From: Klebsormidium nitens | Lineage: Eukaryota > Plantae > Klebsormidiophyceae | Assembly (NCBI GenBank): GCA_000708835.1 | Contig: DF237133.1 | Coordinates: 62,001 to 126,000, forward strand | Length of the DNA: 64,000 bases | Direction of reading: 5' to 3' | Made by a program: the position numbers and the translations under genes | The notes under the pieces: generated by a model | What the model was told of the DNA's origin: nothing | Databases searched by the model: none | The model's input: only the letters and a program-made list of their open reading frames with translations | Shown here: positions 24,950-55,900 of the stretch, one piece after another | Position numbering within the stretch: position 1 is the first letter of the stretch | Layout: every line of letters starts with the position of its first letter

Positions 24950-25084
24950 CCTCCGCCCAAAAAGGATCCCTAGCAAGGAGCAATTGCGTCACCAATGTCA
25001 CTGTATATGTAATGCAGATATTGAGGGGGGTGATTGCCAATGAGTGGAGCGCCACCTGACTTTCTACAGCTGGAAAATCGAATG

Positions 25085-25111
25085 TTGGAACTTGGAACTT
25101 GGAACTTGGAA
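25085..25111. repeat. 7-bp tandem repeat (TTGGAAC)x~4 upstream of the radical SAM gene
   Basis: ttggaac ttggaac ttggaac ttggaa read directly from the sequence. Confidence 0.85.
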
Positions 25112-26403
25112 GAGTAGCCAGCCTATCCCCAGCACAAGTCAAGGGTCTGACGTGTCGCTAAAGCCAGATGCTCATTGGTTGCTTCCGGCCACGTCGACGA
25201 TCGGGGGATCACCCTGGTGAATTTTGGAGGGCAGGCGTAAGTTCTCTCGGCAAGCAAATCAGCGCGGCAGCATAGCTAGATATAAGGTCCGCGGTCTAGG
25301 ATAAGCGGTTCTCTAAGATTGTCTAGAGTCGATGACACGCTCATAGGTACGACGTTTTCTGTAGCTGACGTGTATGCAAAGAACTTATAGTAGATCAGCC
25401 AATCTTTGAGACATCAACTTGTAGAAAGATTCATGATCGACCATAAATGATAATTAGGGTAGGCAAAAGTTTAGGTAAAAGACTGATTTCCACATGCATC
25501 ACGCTTGCATTGAGCTTGCGCTGCTGAGTTTGATAGTGACAAAATCTAGGCATTAATACGTAGGCCATGAAGAAGCAGATCAACCAGAAAGTGCTTCATG
25601 GAGCAAAACTACGGCCGCTGCAAACAGATGGTCTTTGTTGACCCAATAGACCAGGCAAAGACCCGGTAACTGCAGCAATTGTTGAACAAGTAATAATAGT
25701 ATGGCATTGGAATTTAAAGGTTGACAAACAATACAAGTCGGTTAATCACGTCCTGTGTTGCAGGCTTCTATACAGGTGGGGACAGCTGATCTACATGCGC
25801 GATCTTCTGAGCGCGCAACCTTACATCAGAGGCTCGCTCTGATGCACTTACATTGAAAAGCAGATGCTTGATTGCATTCTCGCACTCAGAGTAGTCATTC
25901 GTCACCGCGAGCATCATTGATTGATTGCAAGATTATTGTTTTTTGGGGTGGGGCTCCAACCCCGCCCCAACGTTCGCAGTAATTCTGACACCTTGTTAAA
26001 GAAAGCTCTTCAAAGGGCAAGCTGGACAATGTTGTCAACAGAAACAAAAAGGCGCCCATCTTTTGCCGATTGAAGCGTGTGAAGATCTGGCGATGTCAAG
26101 CTTGACGGGCAAATCGGTCTGTACAAGATCTGATTGGAGCGACTCTCGAAGGAAACCGTTCGCTGCTGTTGCTTTAACTCTGGCCCTCTACTACCAAGGA
26201 ATCGAGTCGGTTCGCGCTTGTCGGGTGGTTTTCAAAAGCTAGCGTTCTCATCTATGGACCGCTTGATATCATCGATGTCATGCGGCATGAGCGGCAAGCT
26301 CTTGCCAATCAGTGCACTACCAAGTTTGTTTTGCTCATATACAGCTAAGACCAGTACAAACGTTGCAGGCTGCGAAAGGAGGTGATCTCTCTCGCTCTAG
26401 TTC

Positions 26404-29400
26404 CTATCTGCAAGGGTCGGGGCCGTTCGCTAGGAGGCTGGCGCTGAGGCGGAGCGCGCCGCCCTGAGTGTCGGCCGCCGTCAGGTTGCTGCTCGCGAAG
26501 CCGGTCGCGGCGACGACCTGACTGCGCGCGCACACAGGAGGAAACACGAAGGCGTCAGACACCGACATTGTGACGTCAGAAGAGTTGGCGACTTGCTGCT
26601 CGCGTAGCCGGCCGCGACTGCGCACGCACAGGGAGAAAGACGAAGGGGTCAGACAGGAGATTGCGACGTCAGAAAAGTTGGACACTTGTCAAGAGGTCTG
26701 CGATTTGCCTTGCTGCTCGCATAGCCGGCCGCGGCGACTAGTACATGCCTGCGCGCGACCAGGAGAAAGGAGCAAGGCGCCAGACAGGAGATTGTGACGT
26801 TAGAAACGTTAGCTGCGGGGACTGCAGCCGCTGCTTGCGTGGTCGGCTAGACTGCGAGCGCCCCGAGGTACGAGCCGAAGACGTCAGAAATGACAATTGT
26901 GACGTCACAGAGGAGAGACGCCTCGAAAAGACGGGAAAGGAGATGGCACAGACGAGAGACGTTTCTGTAATCGTCGCCGGTCTGGCTCCAGATGGACCAG
27001 TGGTCACCTTTTCTTGGTTATAGCCCGGGCGAGGAAAAGCAAGTGGGAGTCGTGCACGTGGCATTGAGCAGCGAAAAGTGGGCGAAAGTCTATCCCGACC
27101 GCGGCTCGGAAAGCTTTGAAGCTCGTCCGTTGTCAAAGCGGGGTCAAACGATCTGATTGGACCAATCGCTGCGGTTCAAGGTCGGTACGATCAGTGGACC
27201 TGTTTGACGATAACTTACCTGACGAGCACTTGGGCGTTGAGAGATGCAGACATTTGCAGGGATCCCCCTGGCTGCAAAAGAACAGAAACAGTTCATGAGC
27301 AATAATCGAATACTGAGAAACGCGGTGACAGCGGCGTGGCCTAATCAGTCAGATACGGTTGAAAAGGGTTTCAAGGATGTCGCAAGAGCTGCTTGAAAAC
27401 TCTCGCCCTAGTTCGCTTCGCAGACTGGCGCGCGAAGAAGTTCGATTGAAGTCGTCGGAAACAACTTCCAGCGTAACGTGTGGCGACATGTTACTTGAAC
27501 TGGATACAGAACCCAGTGGGTATCAGGAGACAGGTATTCACGCCCCAGTCTCAACGGCAATACTTTTGACTATCGGGGGCGCGACATTTGATGAAGTTGG
27601 GTTGGTTTTACAAGTCTAATTTTAAAGGTTTAGGACTCGAATAAGGCTCTAGAAGATAGGGCTAAAATGAAACTCTTACCTGAGCTTTGAATGTCCCAGT
27701 CACGTTGAGCCGAGGCGTGTTATTGAAAAGGAGGTCCCTATCGCGGACGTCGATGTCCTGCCCCGTCAGCGTTCCGTTCACCCGACCGATATAGATCGTT
27801 CCGCCCGTGAACTCTATGGAGTAGCTGCCATCGGACTGGTTGACCGGAAACGGCGGGGCTGCGAAGAAAGAAAGGACGCATGGGTGAAAACCCTCATGGT
27901 CCTGTCTGTTTTTCTAAAAGAAAGTCGGAAAGGAAAGATTTTGATGCAGTTTATGCTTCTTTTTGGAGACTCAAAGACAAGCGGGGGTCGCTGCAAACAA
28001 AGATCCGTTAAGGAGACGGAGTCAGTGTCTGCGAAGGGTCGTCATGGATCTGAGCTTTGGCGATTTTGGGCCAAGTCTCTGAGATGATTTCATCTTGTAA
28101 GCGGAAAGATGGCGCTGCAAAATCAATCAGAAGATACTGCACGACGCAATTCGGCGGCTTGACCTAAGACGGCGAAGCTTGCGTCAGTGCAGGTCAAACT
28201 GCTAGTCCTCCCGGGAGAGGGATGCCAAGCGGAAGCGAAGTTCTGGGCAAAAGAGATTGTCGGTCGAAAGCTGAAACTCCGGATCTGAGCGACAGGGGCA
28301 TGAGGCAATTGCGGAGTCCGTTCCCTCGAATGAAGACGATGGAACGGCGAATGAGATCAAGAATACGTTTGCACCCTGTGAGCGAAAATGAACGACAGCA
28401 TGTGCAATTTGTGCGTAACTGTTGAGCCGGGTATAAGCAAGCGGACCACGTCGGAAGCCCACTAGACGGTGGTCGATGATTCCGAAGGTCGGCCTGCGTA
28501 TGGGGAAGAAACATATACTTCGCCCACACCTTTCCAAAGCGTCGAGGAATGTGCACCCAAGTCCTGCGCCTGGTGTAAACCTCAATGAGCAATTTCGGAG
28601 CAAGCGCACTGGCGCCCACGTTGCAGAGGCGAGAGAGATCAAGAGGCCACGAAATCAAGAGGCCGCTCGATTACTCACTCGAAACGTTCAGCGAGACATT
28701 TGCGACGGTCACGGTCCCCGCGAATCCCCGGGTGGTGTTGGCGGAGACGGTGAAGACCGGAGGCGAGGACGTGATGTTGGTGCCCACTACAGACACCTGT
28801 GCGCGCGCACACAGGCTTGGATCAGCCGAGTTTCCTTGAATTCATTCTTTAGAAGTTCTTTCGGGTCAGCCAATTTTCTCAAGGGGAGTTGTGATCGCTA
28901 CACCAGCATTAATTGTACAGAATGGAGTGTCTTTCCGTTGAACGTCCAGGGAACCTTTGCAGCCAACAATGAATTGAAGGTTTTTTGTCCTCCTTACTCG
29001 CCTAGGGCCACTCTTTGAGGCTCGATCCAGTGCAACGTGCTGACGGCATCTTTGCTCGAATTGATCTGCTTGATTCTGATTGAATCCCCACAAGCGAAAC
29101 CCCATACAAACCGATGGACGGGTGTATCTGATCAGTCGCTCCGCGAAGAGTCTATGCAGCTTAGAAGAGAAAGGAGGGTCTCGTTCGAAAGCATGCCCAA
29201 TGATTTGGATCGAAACTTAAAGCGCAAGCACCAGTTTCCAAGTTGATGTCGTCGTGCTTACGTTCAAGGGCAGCGCCGCTGACCCGCACGCGATGATGTT
29301 GAGCTGTATCACGCCTGCAGGCAAGTCGCAGTGTCAGACGTCTGTCGTGGGCTCTCAAGAAGTCTTGAGCTTCCTCCAAGCAGTAAACACTAATCTGGAC

Positions 29401-30108
29401 TATACGAGGCTGTACCTCTGTGAACAAAGCAGAACAAAGCGCCCCTAACGTACCTCTGTGTACGGAGTTACATTCGAGAAGTTTCCGCAAGGTTCTGTTC
29501 TAGGGAGTTGATCATGCAAAGTCATCGCAAGTCTTCGCCGAGTTATCTTCTTAAGAAAACTCGACTCCTTGACTCTATTTTCAAAATCAGCTGCAGCGAA
29601 AATGCAGCTTTTTGTCACAATTTATCGAGTCAGGGCATCGCCCAGGGTCTCTGCATGTGAGCTCACAAAGTTTTATCCAGAAACGTGACCCGCTTTCACT
29701 GAGGACTTTCACCGCATCTTCGGAAAACGTAACCTGCTGCTCTGGTTTTTTCAAAGATCACCTCTTTTGACGAGTGGCAATTCCTTTAAACAGGCCTTCA
29801 GATCAAGCGCTGACAAGCTTTAGAAAACTGGCTCTGGAGACGGTTCGTCACAGGCTCTCCCTTAGAAGCGAAGGCAGCAAAGCAAAGACGGAGGCAACTT
29901 TCAGCAAGATGAAGAAGAGCCCACCTGTAGTTTCCGTTTGGGGGGGGTTAAAATTGAGCGAGAACCCGGTGGGTCCGCCGGAGAAGCGCGGCGCGACCGT
30001 CGAGTCCACCCCGGATATGCTCAGGTTGGTGTTCCCCTGCCCCCGGACCCCCCCGGCGCAAAACAGGCAGAAAAGGCACGTGGCCAGAAGCACGAAGCGA
30101 GCAGCCAT
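26404..30108 (-). CDS. Uncharacterised secreted beta-strand-rich glycoprotein, paralog B, 234 aa
   Basis: Six exons: 30108-29925, 29314-29262, 28796-28679, 27858-27680, 27271-27219, 26521-26404 (705 nt), all GT-AG and phase-consistent. Signal peptide MAARFVLLATCLFCLFCAGGVRG. The mature chain has 11 N-x-S/T sequons and two Cys (IACGS; GPDPCR*). Exon structure matches paralog A. Confidence 0.9.
26522..26925 (-). repeat. Array of three extra degenerate acceptor plus exon-6-start units in intron 5 of paralog B
   Basis: Acceptors (cgcag|) with first exon-like base at 26617, 26748 and 26851, versus the true one at 26521. Each has a polypyrimidine tract and ctgac-like motif and is followed by a variant of GCCGGCT(A/T)CGCGAGCAGCAA. 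Confidence 0.8.
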
Positions 30109-31022
30109 TGCTGAAGAATGGTTTGCCCAAACGATATGAGATTAAGTCGTGATTATCCTGCCCACGAATTTTGAATTGTGGCGCGAAATGGCTGAGCTTG
30201 ATCGCTTTTTCAAAGACAGGCGGGAAGAAAAGGAGCGCCCCACCGCGTCTTCTTCTCGAGATGGTGAAGCGTGCAATCCCACCGAGTGCCAGCTCAGAAA
30301 ACCTGGTCAATTGGGTCGACCTGTAATTTTATCTCGTATGTCGGAATAAAATCTTCCCCGCATGCATGGCTGACCCAAAAGAGACATCAGCATACTCGCA
30401 TTTGGGCTGCTGCCGGGAAGATCGACTGTCAGGCCACCGATCGTCGCAACTCTTCACTGTCCTGGCCTGCGATCGGCCGGGTGCTCGTACATGAGACGAG
30501 TTTCAAGTGGGCGCATTCAAACACGTGGCAGGGCCATGCACCTGCAGGGACTCAAAATAAGCTGAGCTTTGCTTGGGACCGGAAGGGTACAGCTTTTAAG
30601 AAGAGTATTTGGATCCGCGAGGGCCTAAGCTTTGCTAAGTCAAATCTCGATCACCAGCTCCTTGTAAGAGACGGTTGTTTACAGTCATGCTCTCATGGGC
30701 TCGAGCTTTATCAAACCAAGACTCAAAAGATCAAGCAGGTCACCTAGTGCGGTTTCAATCATGCTTTGACCCGCACCTAAAAAAAAAATGGATGGCCGCT
30801 GTTGGACGTTCAGATTCGTCGTCCAATTAGGTATCACATAGACGAAGTTGGACGGTCCTGCGATCTGCTCCCGGCCGGTCCCGGTCCCTTCCGTCACAAA
30901 GTATCGCAAGCTTCATACGATCCGGTCGTCTGACGTCCCAGAGCGATGCTGGAATATGTAAAAAGCTTGCATCGATTACGTCTTCCTATGCGAGGGGCCG
31001 TCATTTGCAGCGCGAAGCGAGG

Positions 31023-32900
31023 CTAGTGATTCGTAGGGGCCGCGAAGGGATTATGCATCACACGATCCGAATCATTGAGTTGCTCCATCGTGGCGTCATG
31101 CTGGTTTGCTTGATGAAGATGAACAACCTCAACAAAGAAGCCAGAAGCGTGTTCAAACTGTTTCAAGTTGCAGCTCGACGGTGATATCTTGGTGAAACAA
31201 GATTGACTCGCATAATCTTGCAGCACGGTCTGAGCGTCGGTCCGAGTGTTTTCAAGTCTGAGCTACACCCTTTATAGGACTGTAGTATTCTACACTACAA
31301 AGAAGGTATTATCCGAAGGTCAAGGCTGCCGCTGCTGCTTTTGACGGGGCACTTTTCAGTCTTTAGAGACGTCATCAAGCCAGAAGACGCTTGGTATCAC
31401 CAGATACTATACAGGTAAAACTTGCAATCAAGCTGAAGTCATCGCTTTAAGAAACTCTAGCAAGCACACAAGCTTGTCAACGGAGACAACAAACTTATCC
31501 AACATATTCTGGCAGCTCCTTTTGTCTCCGTCGACAATCAAACGTCAATGGCGATCGAAGGACCATCCAGAAAGTTCAACTTTCCATTGTAAACAAGCAC
31601 CTCCGTGCCTATCGTCCCCCCCAGAAGCCAGACCGTACTGATGCCCATCATCATGGAACCAAATAAACCTCCCCGCTTGCCTCCGAACCGTTGCCTGCCC
31701 GCTCATCGATCCGCGTGCACTCCTCCCAGGACGTCGCCCCTAGCTTAAGGGCCGTAAGGGTGTTCGTCGCTTGCGATGCAAGGTTGACACCGTTCACGAA
31801 CTCAAGCAGGCCCAGCCAGCCTGCCGCAAGGGCCGCCACATAAATGCTGACCGCGAGCCCAATCATTGAGTCTCGCGCGGAGTCAGATGCATAGCCTATC
31901 CCCATGCCCAACCACGTCACTATGTTAGCGACCACTAGGATCCCCCCGTACTGGGCATTATAATCTGCTGCGCTGGCAATCTTCTCAACGGCGGTTACGA
32001 CGCTGTTCTTTGCAGCTTCTCTCACTTCTTCTATCTGCGAGGAGCTCCAGGGCTCCTCATACAATATGGGTTTTTCGTCCAGGCTTCTGGGCTTGTCCTT
32101 GAAGGCCGCTTTGCTCCCCCAGGGCTTCGGGCGGTCATTATCCCACTGCAGAAATGAGCCTGGGGGACCGTCGCCAAGGCTGTGGCAAATCATTCTGATG
32201 ATACTCAAAGGCGGCGCAAGAGTACCACCGCGGGTTGATGATTCGTCAGGGAGCCAACACTGCGGTGCGTCAGCTTCTGGGCAGCTAAGAATGTACTGCA
32301 TCCCGAGGTCGTCTCGGTACAATGCAGCATAAAAGATATACCCAAGGGCCGTAAGTATGGAGCTCAGAGGCACGAGGACCCCAGTCCACGCATATGTCGT
32401 CCGCCACCCAACGCTGTTGCCGCCATGGTTTTGACGCGGGAGCGCGGCAGCCACCCACAAAAACGCTGTCGTAACAAGCCAGGAGATGCCAACCAAAATC
32501 CCGCTCCGAATCACTGCCCTCAGCTGAGGCCTCCCTGGCACCCCCGACGCGACAAAGTTGTACCGCACCTGGCCCACAGCGGCGCTGCACTTGTGCATGA
32601 CTTTAGGTCCCGTTCGGCCGCGCAGCTCCACGCCGCCTTGTTTTTGCATAGGGACCGAACCCCGGTGTTTCACCGCTGCTCAAAGAAGTACCAGCACAGG
32701 TTGCTGTACACGTCGTCATGGTCCAGGATCGTGGCTTGGTCCGCCTTCTGGCGGGACGCCTGAAACAGGAACCAGGCGAGAATGTATGTGACAGGGGACG
32801 CGAATGCGAGCATCGTCAGCACAGTGCGCGGGCCCATACCATCGGGGCCCACGTCATCATTGGCGAATGGTGCATTTTCGCAGCTGCAGTTGGCAGCCAT
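31023..32900 (-). pseudogene. Near-intronless multi-TM protein gene, apparently disrupted (frame break near 32670; decayed 3' part)
   Basis: ORF 32900-32670 (MAANCSCENAPFANDDVGPDGMGPRTVLTMLAF...) overlaps the 340-codon ORF 32673-31651, which has several TM segments. Beyond 31651, protein-like text continues in shifting frames with in-frame stops (FHDDGHQYGLASGGTIGTEVLVYNGKLNFLDGP; LIVDGDKRSCQNMLDKFVV; VFWLDDVSKD*KVP). An 89-nt intron (CG|gtgaaa...gtgcag|C) could alternatively repair the first break. Confidence 0.45.
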
Positions 32901-34436
32901 GAGCTCCAGTGACTAGCTGCAGCTCTTTCAGCTGGTAGGATTAGATTGAGTCTGTGAATGGGCTACCGTGCCAGCTGTCTCAAGAGGGGCGCCCTGATGA
33001 GCGCACCCTTCAACAAACTCCGAAACTTGAAAGCCGCCATCAGGCGCTAGGTCCCCCAATGAAACTTACTAGGGCAAACGAGGGGCGCATCACACAACGG
33101 AATCTGACATAAGCAGTAGGAGCACAGTCTGCATTTCCCAGCCATCCCGATCCTTCTCAGTCCACTTGCACCGGGTATTACTGATATGTGTACGGTCAGG
33201 TGCCGCCGGCAACTCTCCTAAGATACTTCTGCGCGCGGACCTTTTCTTCCTGAGTTTCGATCGTCCGATGACATCGCAAACTTCGGTCGGCCGTCCGATT
33301 TAGAAGCCTCTCGCGGGCCGCGGCCCAGCCGCGAGGGTCTGGGCCGCCGCCCGAATTCGGCCCGGCGGACTGCTGCCGCGAGTCCGGAGTAGACAGAAGT
33401 CAGCAAACTAATAGCACCAGGTAACACTGAAGCAGGTCCGGAATCGAAGAGCGGGTTGATAGGTTGATCAGGAGAGACGGCCGGCCTGTTTCGTCTTCCC
33501 GTATCGCTGCACTACTGGCAGGATGAAAAGAAAGGACGCTCTGGTCGCAGCAGCTTTCTGATTCTCATAATGCATGTATACAGCTGGTGTTTGCGCCGAA
33601 TTAGCTGGACCGAGTCTCTCTGATAATTGACCTAACGGGCGTTCGGTCAACCCCTGGTCAACCTCGTGGACTAGATATTTTTCGTGCGAGCAGCCATTGG
33701 CACGGAGTAGTAGGCTTGCTCTGATCATGCGGCTCGATCTAGCTAGCCAGATAAGTCTCCTTGAATCGGTTTAGATGCACACTTTCACTCTGTAATGGCG
33801 CTTCGCCATGCAGCCGCAATGGCCGCCGATATTGAACTAGGGTTCCTGGCAGAAGCCCAAGTAAAACGAACCACAGAGACCCGAGATGGTTCACTAAAAG
33901 CTTACTTTCACTCTGCAGTTCAAACGTTGTTATTCAAGATAGCGGACCTATTTGCAGAACTGTTTTAGTTTTCGAAAGGGCTGCTTGGTTGGATCGGCTG
34001 AGATGCGGTGTCTCGCCCTGCTCGTCACTTTTGAAGACTACAAGAAGCTGGAGAGGCATCTGTATTCCAAAGAATATGGAGGCAAGTTACGTGCCCACTA
34101 TTTGGCGTCAGGTTTCCAGCCTTGGAATCAAAACCTACGTGTGAAGCAACGCAAACTGAAATTGAAAATTGTCAAATGCACAGGCAAAGTCAAAAGCACT
34201 TCGTGACATTTGATTAAAAACGCGGCGCATCGGCACATAGCGGCGCTAGTCGCAGTTCGTCCACAGGCTGCAATCGTTTTTGTAGTCGATCGTTGCTCTG
34301 TCCTATTGATGGCATGGGACTGGTTGCTAGCTTCTGTTCACAAAAGACTGGTCGCACTTTAAGAAAGAGCTCAACCTCGCACGCTTTCTCGTGTTCTCTT
34401 CAAATAGAGTCTACTTGTCCTCCTAGATAAGGTTGT

Positions 34437-37400
34437 TTACTTGCACGGGTCCGGGCCGCTTGCGAGGAGGCTGGTCACGAGCCGGATGGCGCCCCCGCTT
34501 GTGTCGCTCGCGGTCAGCTGGCTGCCCGAGAAGCCAGCCGCGGCCACGATCTGACTGCGCGCGAGACAGAGAAGAGCGGCACGTCAGCAAATTTGGTCAG
34601 CGTATCCAGGTCTTTCTGACAAATTATGGTCGCGACCTGACTGCGGGGGCAGAAAAACGAGCGGCACTTCCGTTCCAATCCGATGAAAAGCCCACTTGCG
34701 GTGAAGGTTCGGTGCTTTAATCCCAGCTTTCAAAGACAGGAATGAGACACGGTTGCGGAAAAGTAGGATAATGGAAAGAGTAGAAGATGCACGTCGATCG
34801 TTACTAATCCTGTCTTCTTCCTGGCTTCCTCGGTAGGTAGAGCGTTTTTTTGACCAAAGCATCAGCATATGTGTTTCATGAGACCTGCTGGGCGAGACCT
34901 GGGTCTTTCTACATGCTTAGAGGTATGTTATCCAGATAAAGCTTCACCCGAACAGATGGAGAAAAGTTCGACTCCCGAGGTCTTATCACCGAGACTCTCA
35001 CTAACTCCTTCCGTGTTTTCCGGTGAGGGATCCTCATTATCCGTTTGGGCTCCTGTGTGTTACTCTTACCTGATGAGAACCTGCAGGTTCAAGGAGGCAC
35101 TCATACTGAGGGTTCCCCCAGGCTGCGACACAGAGATGACGGTGATTAGTTATCCAGGAGAGACGGTGCTTCTGACGAGGCTCACTGCTCTAACATGGTG
35201 CAGAATCACGAGCAGTCTTTCCTGCTTTCGAACCCGAGTCTACTTCGCGAGAGTCCCGGAATGCAAATACAGAAGCAGTTTCTGACGCAAAGAGAACACA
35301 AGGACAGGGCCTAAAAGGTACGGACTGGGCGAAAGACGTTACGTTTGGGAGGAAGGTACCGATCAAACATGGAGTGCCAACGCTGAGGTTATTTAGCAAT
35401 GATTCAGTCATAAGAAAGGCATCTTTGGAAAGAAAGGTCAAAGCTGCAGCTCACGTCAGCTCGTGACGGTGATTGCTTTGTACTTCGCTACAAGAAGCGC
35501 TTCCCTAGAAGGCAAATTCGAAATCAGATGCCCAGAAGTAGGAGCTTTTGAACGATAATTTTGGCTGCTTGCCCGGGCTCTGGATTCGACGGGCGGCTTT
35601 GCGTCTAAAATCTATTGACCAAGTTGAAAAAGGATGGTGCCGGGCATTGAAAATTCTTGCGCTCAGAATTCAACATCGATCTGCATAGCATTTGACCTTC
35701 CCTTACCAGGGCCTTAAAGTTGCCGGTGACGGGCAGGCTGGGTGGGTTGCTGAAGGAGAACTGCTTGTTACTGAAGTCAAGAGGCCTCCCCGTCAGGGTT
35801 CCGTTCACACGGCCGATGAAGAGGGTTCCGTTGGATATTTCGACGGAATAGCTGCCGTCCGTCTGGTTGACGGGAAACGGCGGAGCTGCAGAAGGAGGAA
35901 GAAGCCAATATGGAGAGCAACACTTTGCTGATCCATTCCATGGCCAATCGTATGATGATCCCTCAGGGCGTTCGAATCAGGGGCTGCGGGGTGGCCATTT
36001 AGAAGAGCCCACGTGGCGTTCTCGCCGAGCCAGAACGATCGAACACGGACAACGATAGAGCATTTGTGGGCACTTCTGACACAAAGCTAGCAGCAATCAT
36101 TCACAGGAAGCGTAGTCGAGACAGTCGTGGCGGCTCAAAGGTGAAGATAGCGAGACAAGGAAAGTACACGCCGCGCGGAAAGATGAGCCTGCAATCGTAC
36201 GGGAAACGCAAGCAGCCACTAGGAGAGAGGACCAGGAACGAGAAGAATGAAAAGGCGAAGACTGGGCCAGCTAAAACGACGGTCAAGAAGAAAAACCGGA
36301 GCAGGAAAAAGAAGAAAAAGGGAAGACAACTCAGAAGAAAAGAACAAACCGAAAAGAGAGTAGGAACCCGAAACGTACTCGTCACGCTGAGGACTATGTT
36401 GGTGATGGTCACCGCTCCCGCAAATCCGCGGGAAGTGTTGGCCGACACAGTGTAGACCGCGGGGGTGGAGGTAATGCTTGTGTTGGCGATTGCCACCTGT
36501 CATCGGACACATGTCAGCGGCGCGCTTCTTTGTACGCTTACCGGATTGCATCATTTGTCTTCCTCGATCTCGAAGATAACCAAACAGCTTTCTGCAAACG
36601 GTCACGAAATAAGACTTCCATCAAAAGTACGAGGGTTTTACTTTACGAAGCTTTTGAACTTCGGCTTTCCGTGATCAGATTGAGGCGAGTTCAGTCATAG
36701 GTAGACGTCCAGAGGAAAAGGTCCTTCCTGTATGAAACCTGGACACATGGTTGGGAAGTTGGGATTTGACGGGGCAGGTCTCTTGTATTCTGAAGTCCTC
36801 TCTGCCTTCCTCGAGTCTTTCCAAAAGAAAAACGTACAGATACTCAAGATGAGGCAGTGGGCGATTGAATGAGTATTTAGTGACGGCAGGCTTACGTTTG
36901 AGGGCAGTCCCGCTGATCCGCATGAGATGACGTTGGCATCAATCGTACCTGGAAATATGGTTTGTCGTAGTTCAAGCTCTCTGAATTATGTCACCGCTTT
37001 CTCATGTACAAGGATACTGACTGATCCGCGTCACACGTCGTAAGCGGCAAAATCTGGGCTTCTCCTGTTGAGATTTTTCAAGCGTCGAACGAACAAGCCC
37101 TGGATCGGTGAAGCCGGCAGACATTACCATTAATGGTGGCAGGTTCCAATAAACCAGAAGCTGAAGATGTTTATGAAGGCGTTTGCCATCGGTACTTGCG
37201 ATTGCTTCAGTTTGGAAGCGCTTCTTGGTGTTTCAGTAATAGATCTACACAAGGAGCTGGCTAATTCGACAATGTCAAGAGATGCAAAATCTGCGGACAC
37301 TTCAGGTCCGCGGCTGAGCAAGTGAACACCAGTTTACGTCATGAAACTGTTGATACTATCAGACCTGTATGGGTCCTTTTGAAGAAGAAATTACTAAAAG

Positions 37401-37892
37401 ATATTGCCTCTTTCTTGGCCTGCCCCTTGATGAACAATTTTCACAAAAGGCACTCTACTAAAACCTCTACATGATTCTGAGAATTCATAACAGTAGCTGT
37501 TCATGCTTCGTGTGATTCCAGACACAGGTGGCATCAGACAAAGGTGTTCGCAACTTCTTTGACTCATCTTGAAAAACTTATAAGCTAAGACCTCGTTAGA
37601 CACGGGAATTTGGCGGGACACGGAAACGAAATATGATCAAGAGGGTCCTTCAGGCCCCACAGTCCACTGATCTTTGTCAAAGCAAGAGCTGGTCCTTGAG
37701 CCCACCTGAAGTCGCCGTCTGGGGGGGGTTGAAGGTCAGGCCAAACCCCGTTGCACCACCCCCCTCCCGGGGTGTCACGAACGAGTCCGGGAACGAGATG
37801 CTCAGCGTGGTTGGCCCCTGGGCTGACACGTGGCACAGGCTCAGCAGGCAGAAGAGAACCACAACCTGCAAGAAGACGCTGCGAGCAGCCAT
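34437..37892 (-). CDS. Uncharacterised secreted beta-strand-rich glycoprotein, paralog A, 235 aa
   Basis: Six exons: 37892-37706, 36948-36896, 36496-36379, 35885-35707, 35122-35070, 34554-34437 (708 nt). Exons 2-6 have the same lengths as in paralog B (53/118/179/53/118). Signal peptide MAARSVFLQVVVLFCLLSLCHVSA. About 64% identity to paralog B over the mature region by hand alignment (136/211). Confidence 0.9.
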
Positions 37893-38558
37893 TGTTGGTG
37901 GGCTTTCAGGAGATGAATAGCTGAGCCTTTGAATTGTGCGCTCTCGTATATTCCCTCTTTTCTCAGATTGCTTCCTTTGAGGGCAGAAATATTTGCACTC
38001 GTGGATTGCAGGTAAACGGAGCCGGAGAGAGGAGATTTCTGGAGAGCCTGTCAACCAGCTTCTCGAAGGGGCTCCTCGATTGCTTCTTTTACTAAGTTTG
38101 ACGCTATGGTGAGATAGTCCAAGCCTTGCAGACTTCAGATTATGACCAACTGATCATCAGTTCTGTCGGCCAGAATACCTCCACTGGTCATGACAGAGCT
38201 ACTACAGTAGCTAGCTCTGGAGGTCGATGATGCAGCGCAGTCGATGTTCATGCACAAGTTTGTCAGACGGTCCCCCACACTGGTTTGCTCGCTATGTCAG
38301 AGGGCTTCCTTGACTCTGTGCGGCGAAGGAGCGTCTATCGTCCAACTTGCATGGGCCCAGTCAAGTTGCCAGCTGGCAGCCTGCAGCCACTGCTTATGTC
38401 TGAAAACAGGCTCCTCATCACGAAGGGCTCTACATTAATATGCTAGTACCGTACGGAACCAATACGTCAATCTGACGAGTCAGAGGCTATTGAGATCCAG
38501 CAATCGGCTGGTCAAGATCGAATCATTAGCTTGATCAGTGGAACAGCTGGTTGCTTAC

Positions 38559-39249
38559 AAAAGAAGTAACAGCAGAAGCCAAGAAGCCCTTGCCTTTGGG
38601 GCACTGCAGCACCGATCCACCGAGTCTGGCTACCAGCTGCGAGCGTGCTGCGAGCACGTGCATGCTCAGCTGCTCAGCGTTTGTACGTCAATTTGAGCTT
38701 ACGTAGACTACGTCTTCCAAATAGTGTGCCGGGCCTGAAGTCAGCTTGTGAAGCTCGTGTCGAAATTGGCGCATCACCGCTGCTTCGTGAGCTGCTTGTG
38801 GGCTGATTAGGGAGCGGCACGCAGGAGAGAGCGGCTGACGCATTGTGGCAAGCAGTGAGTCGACCGGACGCAAGAGCCTTACACAATATTAAACGATAAG
38901 GCTGTGCTTCTGCCGCCTTTTCAGCGCAGAAGGGGCGTCTTTCTCCTATCAGCGGACGGAGCTGGTCACGCGGGCGCGGCTTGCGAACATTGGCGGCCGC
39001 GCTGAACCAGTACGGCGCAGGGTTTGGGTCCGTAACTAATCCTCGGGGGTTTTGAGCGGTTTGCCACATGCCAAATATTGCACACGACACGGACCGTTGA
39101 TGCCGCCCGAAGTTGCTCGCAATATATTCATCGCAGCCGTTGAAAAACCTGTTGTCTGGAGTGCCGTCCCGGCGTACCGTCTCCTTTTTTCTTTCACACC
39201 GAACCTTCTTGTGTCTGTTGGAGAAATATCTGAGATTGACCAGTGTCAT
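38559..39249 (-). pseudogene. Possible decayed spliced gene remnant of unknown family
   Basis: Open frame ...HELHKLTSGPAHYLEDVVY|gtaagc (38703), a 66-nt intron, then exon 38636-38559 (LVARLGGSVLQCPKGKGFLASAVTSF|gtaagc) in matching phase. Upstream protein-like text lies in different frames. No intact model. Confidence 0.25.
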
Positions 39250-39555
39250 TGACGTCGTATGGACGCTCTTCAGTCGTTATGCTTCTTGCACCGACGATGA
39301 TGAAGCGTTCCAATCGAACGGTTCACACATTCCCGCACCTAACTGCAGGACACCTGAGGTCCTGAGTCAGCTGTGGCTGCTTCGTAGCCAGCACAGTTCG
39401 TGCTCAGTCAGCTAGACAGAGTGCTGAAAAGGCTGACGCATTCACTTTCTCAGCAGCGCCCCCATTCTCTCGTTGAGAGGAGCAGTCTTTCTCATTCTAT
39501 CCCTTCATTCTACGGAACACCCCTCATTTCTTCAGCGCACTGACCTGTCAACAAA

Positions 39556-47218: not shown

Positions 47219-48568
47219 TCAAACTTTCTTGACCAAAACGCATTGTTTCGGCCACCGAACTACCACTTGAAGCCAAGGATGGAGTCTTTGGAATTGCAAC
47301 AAGCGCATGACACAATTATCTACGGCAATGTCCTCGTATGAAAGCTGAGCAAGGTCGATGTCAAGGTTCTCAAGCTTTGGGGCAAGCTTAGCAAGCTCCC
47401 GACATTTGGCAAAGTGCTCCTCTGTAATTGTGCGCCTAAAAACCAGCTTCAACCCCTTCAAAGTAGAAAACGACTTGGAAAGGATGGAGGTTTCTAGCGA
47501 CATCGAAATGAACTCAAGGATGTGCCCAGACATCTCCAGATTTTCAAGACGCTTGAGGTGGTGTAGGAGTGATACCAAGATCACATCTTCTTCACTTAGA
47601 TCCAAGATTAACAGGGCTCGTGCATCATTACACGCACGAAGTGTCGCAATGAGCTCCTCTTCACTTGTCCCAGCGACACCTGTCATTTTGATTTGCAAGT
47701 TGCGAAGTTTCCAGGGACCCCTCTTCACGATGCCCCAAGCACAATGCAGGACAAGGTTCACGAGGCGCGGCGCTTCAACTCTTAGCGTGGTCGTCCAAAC
47801 AGCCTCCAAGGACTCCAGTTGTGGTGTTGTCAACTCCAGTGTGTTGGCTTCATCCTCTGGCCTAAAGACCAAAGTTTTCAAACTATTGGACGTTATGGTT
47901 GGGTCCGCTAGATTGTACACTTCGTCAATAAGCAGATCTTCCAAGCAAGGGCAACCTTGGATGATGCTTGCAAGGCAAGAATCTTGCATTCCAAGTGACA
48001 TTAAGGTAAGCTTGACCAGGGACGCAAAGGAACGGATGCTTGCCAAAGGCTTGCAAAAGTCCAAGAAAATACCGTCAATCTCCAATGACCTCAGTCGACC
48101 GCACGTCGAGAGGGTTTCCAAGAGATTCTGCTCATACTCCCCACCTTGCTTGTCCTCGATAGGAGAGTCCTGAAAAACCTCAAGGTGTTCCAACTTGGGC
48201 ATCGTGCTTGAGATGGCACTTAGAAAGGTCTTGGATATCCGCGCACCATGCAGGACCAGATTCTTCACCGCCTGATCTTTCTGAAAAAAGCGAAGCACGC
48301 TGGCCTCCATTGGTCCAGATTTGTCCAGAGCAGGGACGAAAATTTCGTTCGTCCGAGGTACAATCTCGTTGAAACGTTTACAGACTGTTCTCCATTGACA
48401 AAGCTGAATCAAGTTTCCCGCACAATTGCAGTTCTTGGAGGAGCACCAACTGTGGGGGCCCTTTCCTGCCATGGTGAGTATGTGGAGCACAATATCGTCT
48501 GAAAGCCTCTCAAAAGGATTCATCTTTCTCTCCGCCCTGTTTCCAGAGCAACGCCGCCGCCTGTCCAT
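47219..48568 (-). CDS. F-box/LRR-repeat protein (plant F-box/LRR/FBD-like), 449 aa, single coding exon
   Basis: ATG at 48568 lies just after an acceptor (ttttctgcag|), implying a 5'UTR intron. F-box-like FERLSDDIVLHIL...WRTVCKRFNEIV. LRR units such as MPKLEHLEV, GRLRSLEI, SLVKLTL, CPCLEDLLI and SNSLKTL. Confidence 0.88.
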   Translation of the reverse strand: MDRRRRCSGNRAERKMNPFERLSDDIVLHILTMAGKGPHSWCSSKNCNCAGNLIQLCQWRTVCKRFNEIVPRTNEIFVPALDKSGPMEASVLRFFQKDQAVKNLVLHGARISKTFLSAISSTMPKLEHLEVFQDSPIEDKQGGEYEQNLLETLSTCGRLRSLEIDGIFLDFCKPLASIRSFASLVKLTLMSLGMQDSCLASIIQGCPCLEDLLIDEVYNLADPTITSNSLKTLVFRPEDEANTLELTTPQLESLEAVWTTTLRVEAPRLVNLVLHCAWGIVKRGPWKLRNLQIKMTGVAGTSEEELIATLRACNDARALLILDLSEEDVILVSLLHHLKRLENLEMSGHILEFISMSLETSILSKSFSTLKGLKLVFRRTITEEHFAKCRELAKLAPKLENLDIDLAQLSYEDIAVDNCVMRLLQFQRLHPWLQVVVRWPKQCVLVKKV

Positions 48569-48756
48569 TGTTGCTTCTGCAGAAAAGTGAACAAAGCATT
48601 CATAGGTATATGCATGACATTGCATGACACTGTACGTGCGCACTGGGGCAAGAGCTTAGCTAGAGGCACAAAGCAGCCGAACTTTTCTTCGGAAAAACGG
48701 ACACGGTTTCAATCACCGGGCACCTGTTGCAGCTACCGGGGAGCCGTTCAACACTA

Positions 48757-52900: not shown

Positions 52901-55900
52901 TTGAGAAGGCAGACTTTTGGATTGTTCTGCCAGGTGGACCACCGCTCGGGCCTCCTCTTCCTGGCCAACACGCTGCGCAAGAGCATGTACGTCCTCAACC
53001 TGCGGCGCGGGGCCGGCTCCGCGCAGCCCCCCGCCTTCGACTATCTCGCTGAGTTCTCGTTTACGGCGCCGGTCCTCAGCTACACCACACTGAACGAGGG
53101 AGTGGTCGACGGGGAGGAGACCGTGGAGATCTACGCTGTGCAGCCAGAGAAGATCCAGCGATATGCGCTGGACGCAGCGTTGGTAAGCAGGATTCTGGTA
53201 ACAAAATTCGGTGCGGGTGGACGGGAATGAATTGTCGGTTGTGGGATCGTTAGGCTGGGGCAATCGGGTTACAAGGGATTTGAGCTCGACAAGTGTACCG
53301 GGTTTAAGTGGACTCTGGGGTTGTCCGCAAGCTAGAGTGTTCTGCTTGGTATATTGGCAAAGTACTGGCTGCCTTCCTTTGCAGCGACGATTGATCCAGA
53401 GGACCATAGAACTTGGTGGCATATTGGCTCGGGCTTTATTTCTCGAGATGCACGGGCTGACATTTTGGACTTAAAATGTGGGGCCATAACCAGAGGAAGA
53501 TGAGCACATTATTGCCGGCCGGCCAACTGTAAATACTTGTGTATTCAGCCCTTCCTTTGCGTTCTCAAGGCCCTCAAGACAGCCAACGACAGGTAGAAGA
53601 GGTTACGCAGATTCCTCTCACTTCTCATCACCTTCGTCTTGAGACTAAATATACATACATTTGTACAGTGCCGCCCACCTCCTGAAGAAGAAGCGGCCCC
53701 CCCTCAGGCCCCCGTGGCCGCGCCAGGGCCCCTTTCCCCCATGATCCTCTCCCAACTCACCGAAGCCCCCCCGACCGCGCACAAGCCCCTTGTTCCCGAA
53801 GTCCCAAGCGCCCCAACCGCTGAGCAACAAGCCCACCCCCCCGAACCGACACCGGAGAATGAACCGAGCGCTCCGGACGCCCCAGAGGGCCTGGACGTGT
53901 CGGTGCAGAAGCAACCGGGGGTGAGCCCCGACCTGACTCGCGAGTTCTCGGGACGGGAGCACGGGCATGTGAACCTGGGCGTCGGCAGCCGGGGCCTTGT
54001 TCAGAACATGAACGAGCTGAAGAAGCAGGCGAGCAGGAGCCGGACGGGGAGCCCAGCCCGGCAACAGGGCCTCGAGGCGAAAACCGCCGGAACGAAAGAA
54101 GCTGAGGGGGTTAAGACGGAGGAAAGTGCAAAGGTGGAGACCAAAACCGAGCAGGGGGTTGAGAAAGCTCCGGAGATTCCCCCCCTGGAGGCCGCCGCTC
54201 CGGTTGCGGCTCAAGAGACGGCCACGGAAGAGGCTAAGGGGGTCGAAGAGGCAAGCTCACAAGAAGCGCCGAAGCTACCGGAAGCGCCAAAAACCTCTGA
54301 AGCCCCGAAACTGCTAACGCCAGCCATGCTGATGGGGGGCCCCAAGGTAGAAGAGCCGCAGCCTGCAGCGCCCCCCCAAAAGAAGGACGCCGGTGCTACA
54401 AACGGGGCGAAGGGGCGCCAGGGGGGTGCGAAGCAGCACGTGGGCAGCCCCCCCAGATCGAAGGGCGGGAACAACGTCAAGTGGGCGCCCAAAGTGGGGG
54501 GTCCGGAGGTAGTGTCGAGCGCGCCCCCCGTCGAGGGGCTCTCGTATGATGACGTCATGAAGGGCGTTGCGGCGAAGAAGGAGGAGCCCAAAAGTAAGAA
54601 AGAGCCAACAAAGGCGAACGCCGCGCCTCCGGCCACAGCGGCGGTGGCGGCGCTCGCCGTACCCCCCCCGGAAAAAGAAGACGGCGCGGTTCTCAAAGAT
54701 TCGGAAGAGGCGGCGGGTCCGTCCGAAGGGGAGAGGGGCGAGCCCGAGAAGAAGCGCAAGGGGAAGGAGAAGGAGAAGGGCCCCGCTCAGGCGGAGGCGG
54801 AGGCCGCCACGAAGGCGGAAAAGCTGGAGGACGTGACGGCGGCGCTCCAGACCGGGGCCCCGGAGGCCCCCGCCGGGGAGGGGCTCGTGGACCCGGCCGC
54901 GCTGACATCTGGCGGCTTCCTATTGGCCGAGAAAGCGAAGGGCCGGAAGAAGAACAAGGGGGGGAACTTGGCGACTGCGGCTGCGGTCCCCCCCCCGCAA
55001 ACCCCTGCGGAAGCAGCCCCCGGCCCCAGCGCGCCGGCACCCCCGTCGCAAGGAACAGTGGCGGTTCCTACGGATTCCAATGAAATGCTCCAGCAGGTGA
55101 AGCAGATTCCGGGGGGGGTTGCGACGGCGGTGGCGAAAGAAGGGAAGAGGATCGAGACGGCGCTGGCGCTCAGACTAGAGAAGGTGATCAAAGCGAACGC
55201 CGAGGCGCAGGCGGCGCGGGCCGAGGAAGAAAGGGCGAAGCGCGAGAAGGCGGAGAAGCTGCGGATGGACACGGCGCTGCAGGCGATCACGGGGGCGCTC
55301 AGCCGTGACCTCCCGGCACTTGTTGAGAAGGTGGGGATTGGTAAAATCAGTACGTGGAGAATCCTAGATACCTATCCTACTTAGCTAAGAGCATCCGTTT
55401 GAAGATTTGGTGAACCACAAGATATGTGTTCTGCACTTCTGCTTTGTGGTTCCGAAAGTTTGTGTTCGTAAATCACATTTGGCCTTCACGGGGGCGCTCA
55501 GCCGGGAGCTCCCGGCGCTCGCCGAGAAGGTGGGCAATGCAATGGTTCTGTATTTTGCACTTCTTGGGTGGTGAGTTTCTTTGAAGATCCGTGGAATCGA
55601 CTATCTTGTTTTGCGTCCCGGATCTGAGATTCTCGGCTGCAAACTTTGCTGACTGCTGATCAAGGTGCTATTGAAGAATGCAAATACCGTCTTCATAATT
55701 GAAATTCGTCGCATAGAATGTCAATGATGCGTGGTTTGCTGTTGTTACAGCACCAAGGTTGTTGTGCTCGAAAGTCTGCCAGTCTGACAAGCCGACCTAT
55801 GTTCACAAACCTGCTGTTATATCTAATTTCTGAACCCACTGCTCCTGTTAATGCAGTCTGTGAAGAAGGAGCTCGCGGCCGCGGCCCCCGCCATGTCACA

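Follow-up and report, generated by a model that had tools for sequence, protein, structure and literature searches.

A tandem pair of six-exon genes in Klebsormidium nitens and the probable secreted, beta-rich glycoprotein family to which it belongs

What do two neighbouring genes encode when their exons agree with one another in length and phase and their products match no characterised protein family? This question is raised by a 64,000-nucleotide stretch of the Klebsormidium nitens genome (contig DF237133.1, positions 62,001 to 126,000 of the forward strand; the whole stretch is hereafter called the window), which is part of scaffold 184 and carries two such genes, gene A (26404-30108) and gene B (34437-37892), both on the minus strand. 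In the study of how green algae came to live on land, Klebsormidium serves as a reference organism, and its cell-surface molecules are poorly known. A preliminary description of this locus, made from the sequence, had viewed the two genes as an unrecognised, lineage-specific family of secreted, beta-rich glycoproteins. Here, we conclude that genes A and B are real, tandem, paralogous genes under purifying selection, and we propose, with a probability of roughly 70%, that they represent a real, secreted, lineage-restricted and beta-rich glycoprotein family of Klebsormidium, with a non-catalytic role in the wall or apoplast.

Structure, constraint and annotation of the two genes

The internal exons were located mechanically on the minus strand by requiring a flanking AG and GT, the exon lengths given in the preliminary description and the peptides quoted there. 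Each internal exon of both genes had a single solution, except for exon 3 of gene A, which had two candidates; the second of these lay in another frame, left no open reading frame (ORF) on splicing and was rejected. For exon 1, a single donor left the frame open and kept the FNPPQT block, in gene A and in gene B. Exons 2 to 6 measured 53, 118, 179, 53 and 118 nt in both genes and exon 1 measured 184 nt (A) or 187 nt (B), giving products of 234 and 235 aa, respectively. All 10 introns were of the GT-AG type and 399-820 nt in length, with phases 1,0,1,0,2 in A and B alike; the donors were mostly GTAAG or GTGAG, and the acceptors ended in CAG and were pyrimidine-rich. The proposed architecture of two six-exon tandem genes, with exons 2-6 equal in length and phase, was thus borne out by this search, and all of the conserved peptide blocks that had been quoted were present in both products. 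The window as a whole has approximately 52% G+C, and its ORFs are short and scattered, as expected for an intron-bearing eukaryote. The exons of the two genes are as follows.

29925..30108, minus strand: gene A (KFL_001840140) exon 1, 184 nt, with the ATG, the putative signal peptide and the mature N-terminus with the FNPPQT block; within a 196-residue stretch identical to the GenBank protein
29262..29314, minus strand: gene A exon 2, 53 nt, with the conserved proximal Cys (ACGSA.LP)
28679..28796, minus strand: gene A exon 3, 118 nt, with the TVSANT.RGFAG block
27680..27858, minus strand: gene A exon 4, 179 nt, where conservation is highest (FPVNQ.DGSY, GRVNGTLTG) and which served as search profile
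27219..27271, minus strand: gene A exon 5, 53 nt, with MSASLN.QVL
26404..26521, minus strand: gene A exon 6, 118 nt including the stop, with the end GPDPCR and stop; proximal acceptor, backed by all three paralogs
37706..37892, minus strand: gene B (KFL_001840160) exon 1, 187 nt
36896..36948, minus strand: gene B exon 2, 53 nt
36379..36496, minus strand: gene B exon 3, 118 nt
35707..35885, minus strand: gene B exon 4, 179 nt
35070..35122, minus strand: gene B exon 5, 53 nt
34437..34554, minus strand: gene B exon 6, 118 nt including the stop, with the end GPDPCK and stop; the spliced product equals the KFL_001840160 protein

Between the proteins encoded by A and B, identity was 62.8% over the full length and 64.3% once the signal peptide was excluded, close to the approximately 64% previously estimated for the mature region. 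When the 6 kb around gene A were compared with the 6 kb around gene B by blastn, six matches were obtained, one per exon pair, with 71-86% identity; the introns of A and B showed 41-49% identity in global alignments, which is the level of noise. Searching the whole window with both products by tblastn recovered these two loci only. The ratio of nonsynonymous to synonymous substitution rates (dN/dS) between A and B was 0.25 by NG86 and approximately 0.08-0.10 by maximum likelihood; because dS exceeds 1 and the synonymous sites are saturated, the ratio cannot be fixed precisely, although it clearly lies under 1. The preliminary description had held that a ratio near 1 would argue against function, and the values obtained were 0.25 or lower. 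It is the restriction of DNA similarity to the exons, in conjunction with the low dN/dS, on which we base the conclusion that the two genes are real and constrained.

The description of the genes as unrecognised did not hold, since both are already annotated in GenBank as hypothetical proteins: gene A as KFL_001840140 (GAQ84315.1) and gene B as KFL_001840160. The KFL genes are Augustus models of the 2014 genome paper, in which assembled transcripts were mapped with SPALN (PMC4052687). The KFL_001840160 protein (235 aa) was recovered when a region-limited word search was started from the stop-free DNA that surrounds exon 1 of gene B, and it was identical letter for letter to our model of gene B. 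The GenBank protein of KFL_001840140 has 266 aa, of which the first 196 and the last 39 residues match our 234-aa model of gene A exactly, and the two models differ solely in that the GenBank protein carries 32 further residues at the junction of exons 5 and 6. In full-length searches, the GenBank proteins KFL_001840140 (266 aa) and KFL_001840160 served as stand-ins for A and B, and the exons were searched singly; the 234-aa gene A product, joined from its exons, was used for alignment, counting and dN/dS only. Two features of gene A bear on the extra residues.

26522..26617, minus strand: 96 nt counted as coding in the GenBank model of gene A, whose acceptor at 26617 lies 96 nt upstream of that at 26521; this adds 32 aa
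26486..26860, minus strand: imperfect tandem copies covering the end of intron 5 and the start of exon 6 of gene A, with a spacing of 93-131 nt and 72-90% identity

The repeats number three to four copies in the 3' part of intron 5, and each copy comprises a polypyrimidine tract, an acceptor ending in GCGCAG and the first approximately 30 nt of exon 6, so that they create pseudo-acceptors at approximately 26617 and 26748, of which the GenBank model takes the former. No such intron 5 repeats were detected in gene B by the repeat search; Tandem Repeats Finder reported nothing, although the copies in gene A were evident in the other repeat search. The insert also brings a third mature Cys. Because the 32 residues are missing from gene B and from both paralogs at a second locus (KFL_006500060 and KFL_006500070, described below), the 234-aa model appears better supported by the sequences than the 266-aa GenBank model, and we regard the insert as doubtful.

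A small family with a narrow detectable distribution

How far does this family extend? In an exhaustive HMMER search, a profile built from the two exon 4 peptides of A and B (59 residues) was compared with 1.84 billion representative proteins. The only single-stretch matches were KFL_001840140 (the best, at 133.7 bits), KFL_006500060 (247 aa; 45.8 bits), KFL_006500070 (236 aa; 37.6 bits, E=1.8e-4) and two exon-sized environmental fragments. One fragment, of 68 aa, occurs as three near-identical variants on JGI/IMG metagenome contigs of up to 116 kb, and the other, of 95 aa, comes from a Logan assembly; both are closest to KFL_006500060 (53-56% identity). KFL_006500060 and KFL_006500070 are numbered consecutively and lie on the same 47-kb scaffold, which indicates a second tandem pair. 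The family thus comprises at least four genes in K. nitens, in two tandem pairs (KFL_001840140/160 and KFL_006500060/70), and the four proteins gave a colinear full-length alignment with 36-63% identity.

The remaining matches of the exon 4 profile (E from 1e-15 to 6e-4) were long repeat proteins, nearly all of them bacterial or archaeal, with Invasin-D3/Big_1, MBG, CarboxypepD_reg or PQQ propeller repeats. We considered these proteins as relatives and rejected them: their scores were sums of 4-32 stretches of no more than 14 bits each, several with a large bias, and when the family profile was aligned with two of the proteins by hhalign, the probabilities were 2.7% and 1.6%, covering only a DG.YS motif of 25-39 residues. 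Because of these weak summed stretches and hhalign values below 3%, we do not take the repeat proteins as members of the family. A scan of 185,579 prokaryotic genomes found no family locus, and two scans of a metagenome contig collection yielded no confirmed locus.

These searches also bear on the resemblance to actinobacterial DUF6230 proteins that the preliminary description had mentioned, and which could have implied acquisition by horizontal transfer. Neither the single exons nor the full-length proteins gave a Pfam match to DUF6230 at E<=10, no bacterial protein matched the exon 4 profile in a single stretch, the prokaryotic genomes lacked a locus, and each gene carries five spliceosomal introns. 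At the sequence level, such a kinship is effectively refuted, and we consider it almost certainly wrong. In contrast to that suggestion, the proposal of a lineage-specific family agrees with the narrow distribution observed (K. nitens and two environmental fragments), and, as far as detectable, the family appears to be confined to Klebsormidium-like algae.

Predicted nature of the proteins

What the four proteins share suggests how they may be used. All of them begin with a tripartite n/h/c signal peptide, read by rule, which is composed of one basic residue, 15-17 hydrophobic residues and then small residues at -3/-1 (small-x-small) before a conserved Gln at +1; the signal peptides noted earlier were therefore recovered at the N-terminus, in this conserved context. 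No further hydrophobic segment or membrane anchor, glycosylphosphatidylinositol-type tail or retention signal was found in the products. The mature chain has a mass of approximately 21 kDa, an isoelectric point of 4.2-6.3 and 11-19 charged residues, and it is acidic and rich in Thr, Ser, Gly, Asn, Ala and Val; it lacks Trp and contains no more than one His and 0-2 Tyr. Its hydrophobicity shows a lag-2 periodicity, as in beta strands. The mature Cys residues lie at positions 71 and 233 in A and at 72 and 234 in B, and this proximal and penultimate pair is the only pair of Cys conserved in all four paralogs.

N-glycosylation sequons number 11 in A and 5 in B, so that both this difference and the two mature Cys of each product, as counted previously, were confirmed. 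Enrichment in sequons was approximately three-fold in gene A (11 vs 3.75 expected, p=4e-4) and KFL_006500070 (12 vs 4.6, p=4e-4), and their tandem partners, with 5 sequons each, showed no enrichment; each tandem pair therefore consists of one sequon-rich copy (11-12) and one sequon-poor copy (5). Both sequon-rich copies have sequon columns in common, yet they are not each other's closest relatives. The one sequon column that is invariant among the four paralogs is the NG[TS] in GRVNGTLTG. In gene A, 7 of the 11 sequons have a hydrophobic middle residue, as would result from placing Asn and Ser/Thr on the polar face of a strand. The four sequences have 48 invariant columns after the initiator Met-Ala; these hold Gly, Pro, Cys, hydrophobic residues or small polar ones, and no column is fixed for Asp, Glu, His, Lys or Arg. 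By the predicted signal peptide and the sequons, the family would fall within the generic class of eukaryotic secreted N-glycoproteins.

From these features, we propose the following course for the family. The precursor of approximately 235 aa would enter the endoplasmic reticulum by its signal peptide, where the invariant NG[TS] and the sequon excess in two of the four paralogs suggest that it becomes N-glycosylated; a single disulfide would join the proximal and penultimate Cys (Cys72-Cys234 in B), and the protein would then be exported to the wall or apoplast, serving outside the cell as a structural, binding or protective protein. A non-catalytic role is suggested by the lack of invariant Asp, Glu, His, Lys and Arg among the 48 columns. 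The cell-wall location, the actual glycosylation and the Cys72-Cys234 disulfide are parts of this course that we only infer.

The same composition could point to a more specific role, namely stress protection at the cell surface, in which flat beta faces rich in Thr, Ser and Asn would bind ice or form a shield against desiccation. Klebsormidium tolerates freezing and desiccation, and the mature chains resemble secreted algal ice-binding proteins in their composition, with Thr, Ser, Asn, Gly and Ala making up approximately 50%, few charges and no Trp. However, likeness in composition is weak evidence, no significant Pfam match was obtained, the ice-binding DUF3494 included, and dense sequons on the polar faces would place glycans on the very surface that should bind ice. 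We therefore consider this role very unlikely.

The preliminary description had held that a confident match to a well-characterised family would remove the novelty of these proteins, and none was found in Pfam, NCBIfam or the PDB sequences. In particular, the eight exon peptides and the four full-length paralogs gave nothing significant in Pfam at E<=10, where the noise matches were Sec_GG (E=0.089) and DUF3237 (E=0.0099, with 16 bits against a gathering cut-off of 24); NCBIfam gave no match, and the PDB sequence profiles gave either no match or E=0.44. Two AlphaFold2 runs, with 5 and 13 alignment rows, reached a predicted local distance difference test score (pLDDT) of 43 and 49, and both models were all-beta by DSSP, with approximately 12-15 strands and consecutive hairpins of 11-13 residues in the C-terminal half. 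An all-beta fold of approximately 12-14 strands, with long C-terminal hairpins, is thus predicted for the family, in keeping with the all-beta pattern proposed earlier, albeit from low-confidence models. Searching with the better model by Foldseek and VIA returned nothing above noise. For two paralogs, separate models are available in the ESM Atlas, with predicted template modelling scores of 0.75 and 0.55, and their nearest structures, at template modelling (TM) scores of 0.46-0.67, were unnamed bacterial proteins, a cadherin/Big-type protein, 8-stranded outer-membrane-type barrels and YceI; being drawn from models, these neighbours serve as leads only.

One such lead is a soluble up-and-down beta-barrel, with which the proteins, like YceI or lipocalins, would carry a hydrophobic ligand; lipids or isoprenoids might thereby be transported through the wall. 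The YceI families and 8-stranded outer-membrane-type barrels among the Atlas neighbours of the two paralogs (TM 0.48-0.58) point in this direction, as do the long consecutive hairpins of the AlphaFold models and the DUF3237 match. However, a TM score of approximately 0.5 between predicted all-beta models means little, the best Atlas neighbours were the unnamed bacterial proteins and the cadherin/Big-type protein rather than barrels, and the AlphaFold model itself gave only noise in the structure searches. Moreover, the YceI (PF04264) and lipocalin models had no sequence match, and the DUF3237 match, besides lying below its gathering score, was seen in the KFL_001840140 GenBank protein only and was missing in the three other paralogs. 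We leave this barrel a small chance; it would be compatible with the favoured secreted glycoprotein, as one specific kind of binding protein.

A different fold is suggested by the automatic UniRef name of KFL_006500060, "SbsA Ig-like domain-containing", according to which the proteins could consist of two tandem immunoglobulin (Ig)-like beta-sandwich domains and act as a surface adhesin or matrix protein akin to bacterial SbsA/Big. The E values of 1e-12 to 1e-15 between the exon 4 profile and bacterial Invasin-D3/Big_1, MBG and CarboxypepD_reg proteins, and an Atlas neighbour with Cadherin_4/Big_9 at TM 0.66, would fit such domains. Nevertheless, the UniRef name was not reproduced by Pfam, as no Ig-like model matched any paralog at E<=10, and the scores of these bacterial proteins are sums of 10-32 weak repeats, with hhalign probabilities that, as described above, cover a single hairpin motif. 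The N- and C-terminal halves were also dissimilar (hhalign 0.1%), and we consider this arrangement unlikely. An internal duplication, which the recurring 53- and 118-nt exons could have reflected, was likewise rejected, with the same hhalign value between the halves and different intron phases (1,0 vs 0,2).

Several points weigh against the favoured secreted family itself. The signal peptide, the disulfide and secretion were read from sequence rules. With a pLDDT of 43 and 49, "all-beta" is a statement about secondary structure only, and the absence of invariant charged residues was established for four sequences. The restricted distribution is likewise bounded by the reach of the searches: the profile is only 59 residues long and the most divergent paralog reached only 37.6 bits, so that more distant relatives could exist, and a word search with the full-length alignment returned three K. 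nitens proteins only and missed gene B, which means that it is not evidence of absence. The literature searched contained no paper or supplement naming these gene ids, and a search for a glycoproteome or secretome of K. nitens retrieved none.

Surroundings, significance and comparison with known systems

Between the two genes lies an unrelated gene.

31651..32900, minus strand: KFL_001840150, a hypothetical protein of 251 aa that contains long hydrophobic stretches and matched nothing in Pfam or NCBIfam

At this gene, the stretch that the annotated model removes as an intron does not interrupt a 340-aa ORF, which continues through it. An Rfam scan of 25000-39500 detected nothing. Elsewhere in the window, a 474-aa ORF at 47219-48643 (minus strand) matched the plant F-box-associated leucine-rich repeat model PF24758 (E=7e-11). 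The most G+C-rich stretch (61%), where the AT skew is also strong, contains a 581-aa ORF at 53639-55384 (plus strand) with no Pfam match, which may be low-complexity sequence or a repeat.

A family that is constrained, sequon-dense and predicted to be secreted, and for which no relatives were detected, may reasonably be put forward as a candidate wall or surface component specific to its lineage. A larger claim can be framed, in which the family would be a new extracellular beta fold of Klebsormidiophyceae serving life on land, with the sequon-rich and sequon-poor copies as specialised partners; if true, surface lipids might, for example, be carried through the wall, or the cell surface shielded from freezing and drying. 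We give this claim only a slim chance. The genes are public, the family is uncharacterised, and taxonomically restricted secreted proteins are of a common kind. The finding is modest: this is one of many orphan secreted proteins, and no larger question is overturned or opened by it. A small correction to the public annotation also follows, in that the 32-aa insert of KFL_001840140 is doubtful.

Compared with known systems, A and B share with the algal ice-binding proteins (DUF3494) a signal peptide, a size of 21-25 kDa, a low charge, a richness in Thr, Ser, Ala, Gly and Asn and a beta-rich character; however, there is no sequence match, and A and B show no sign of a beta-helix. With the YceI-like and 8-stranded barrels (PF04264, OMP_b-brl) they have in common a length of approximately 200 aa, an all-beta prediction and long antiparallel hairpins, but they differ in showing no sequence similarity and a TM score near noise, and the barrels are bacterial periplasmic or membrane proteins, whereas A and B are predicted eukaryotic secreted glycoproteins. 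The likeness to bacterial Ig-like domains (SbsA/Big_5, Big_1, Invasin D3, CarboxypepD_reg) consists of the local DG.Y(S/T) hairpin motif. With DUF6230, whose members come from a different kingdom, no measurable common feature was found. The closest comparison is with KFL_006500060 and KFL_006500070, which are located on another scaffold, and the former of which has a short extra Cys-rich tail. These two proteins align with A and B end to end and colinearly at 36-43% identity, and they share with them the putative signal peptide, the mature N-terminal Gln, both Cys and the blocks FP[VI]N..[DN]G, NG[TS]LTG and G(P/N)(D/N)(P/T)C, as true paralogs of the tandem pair.

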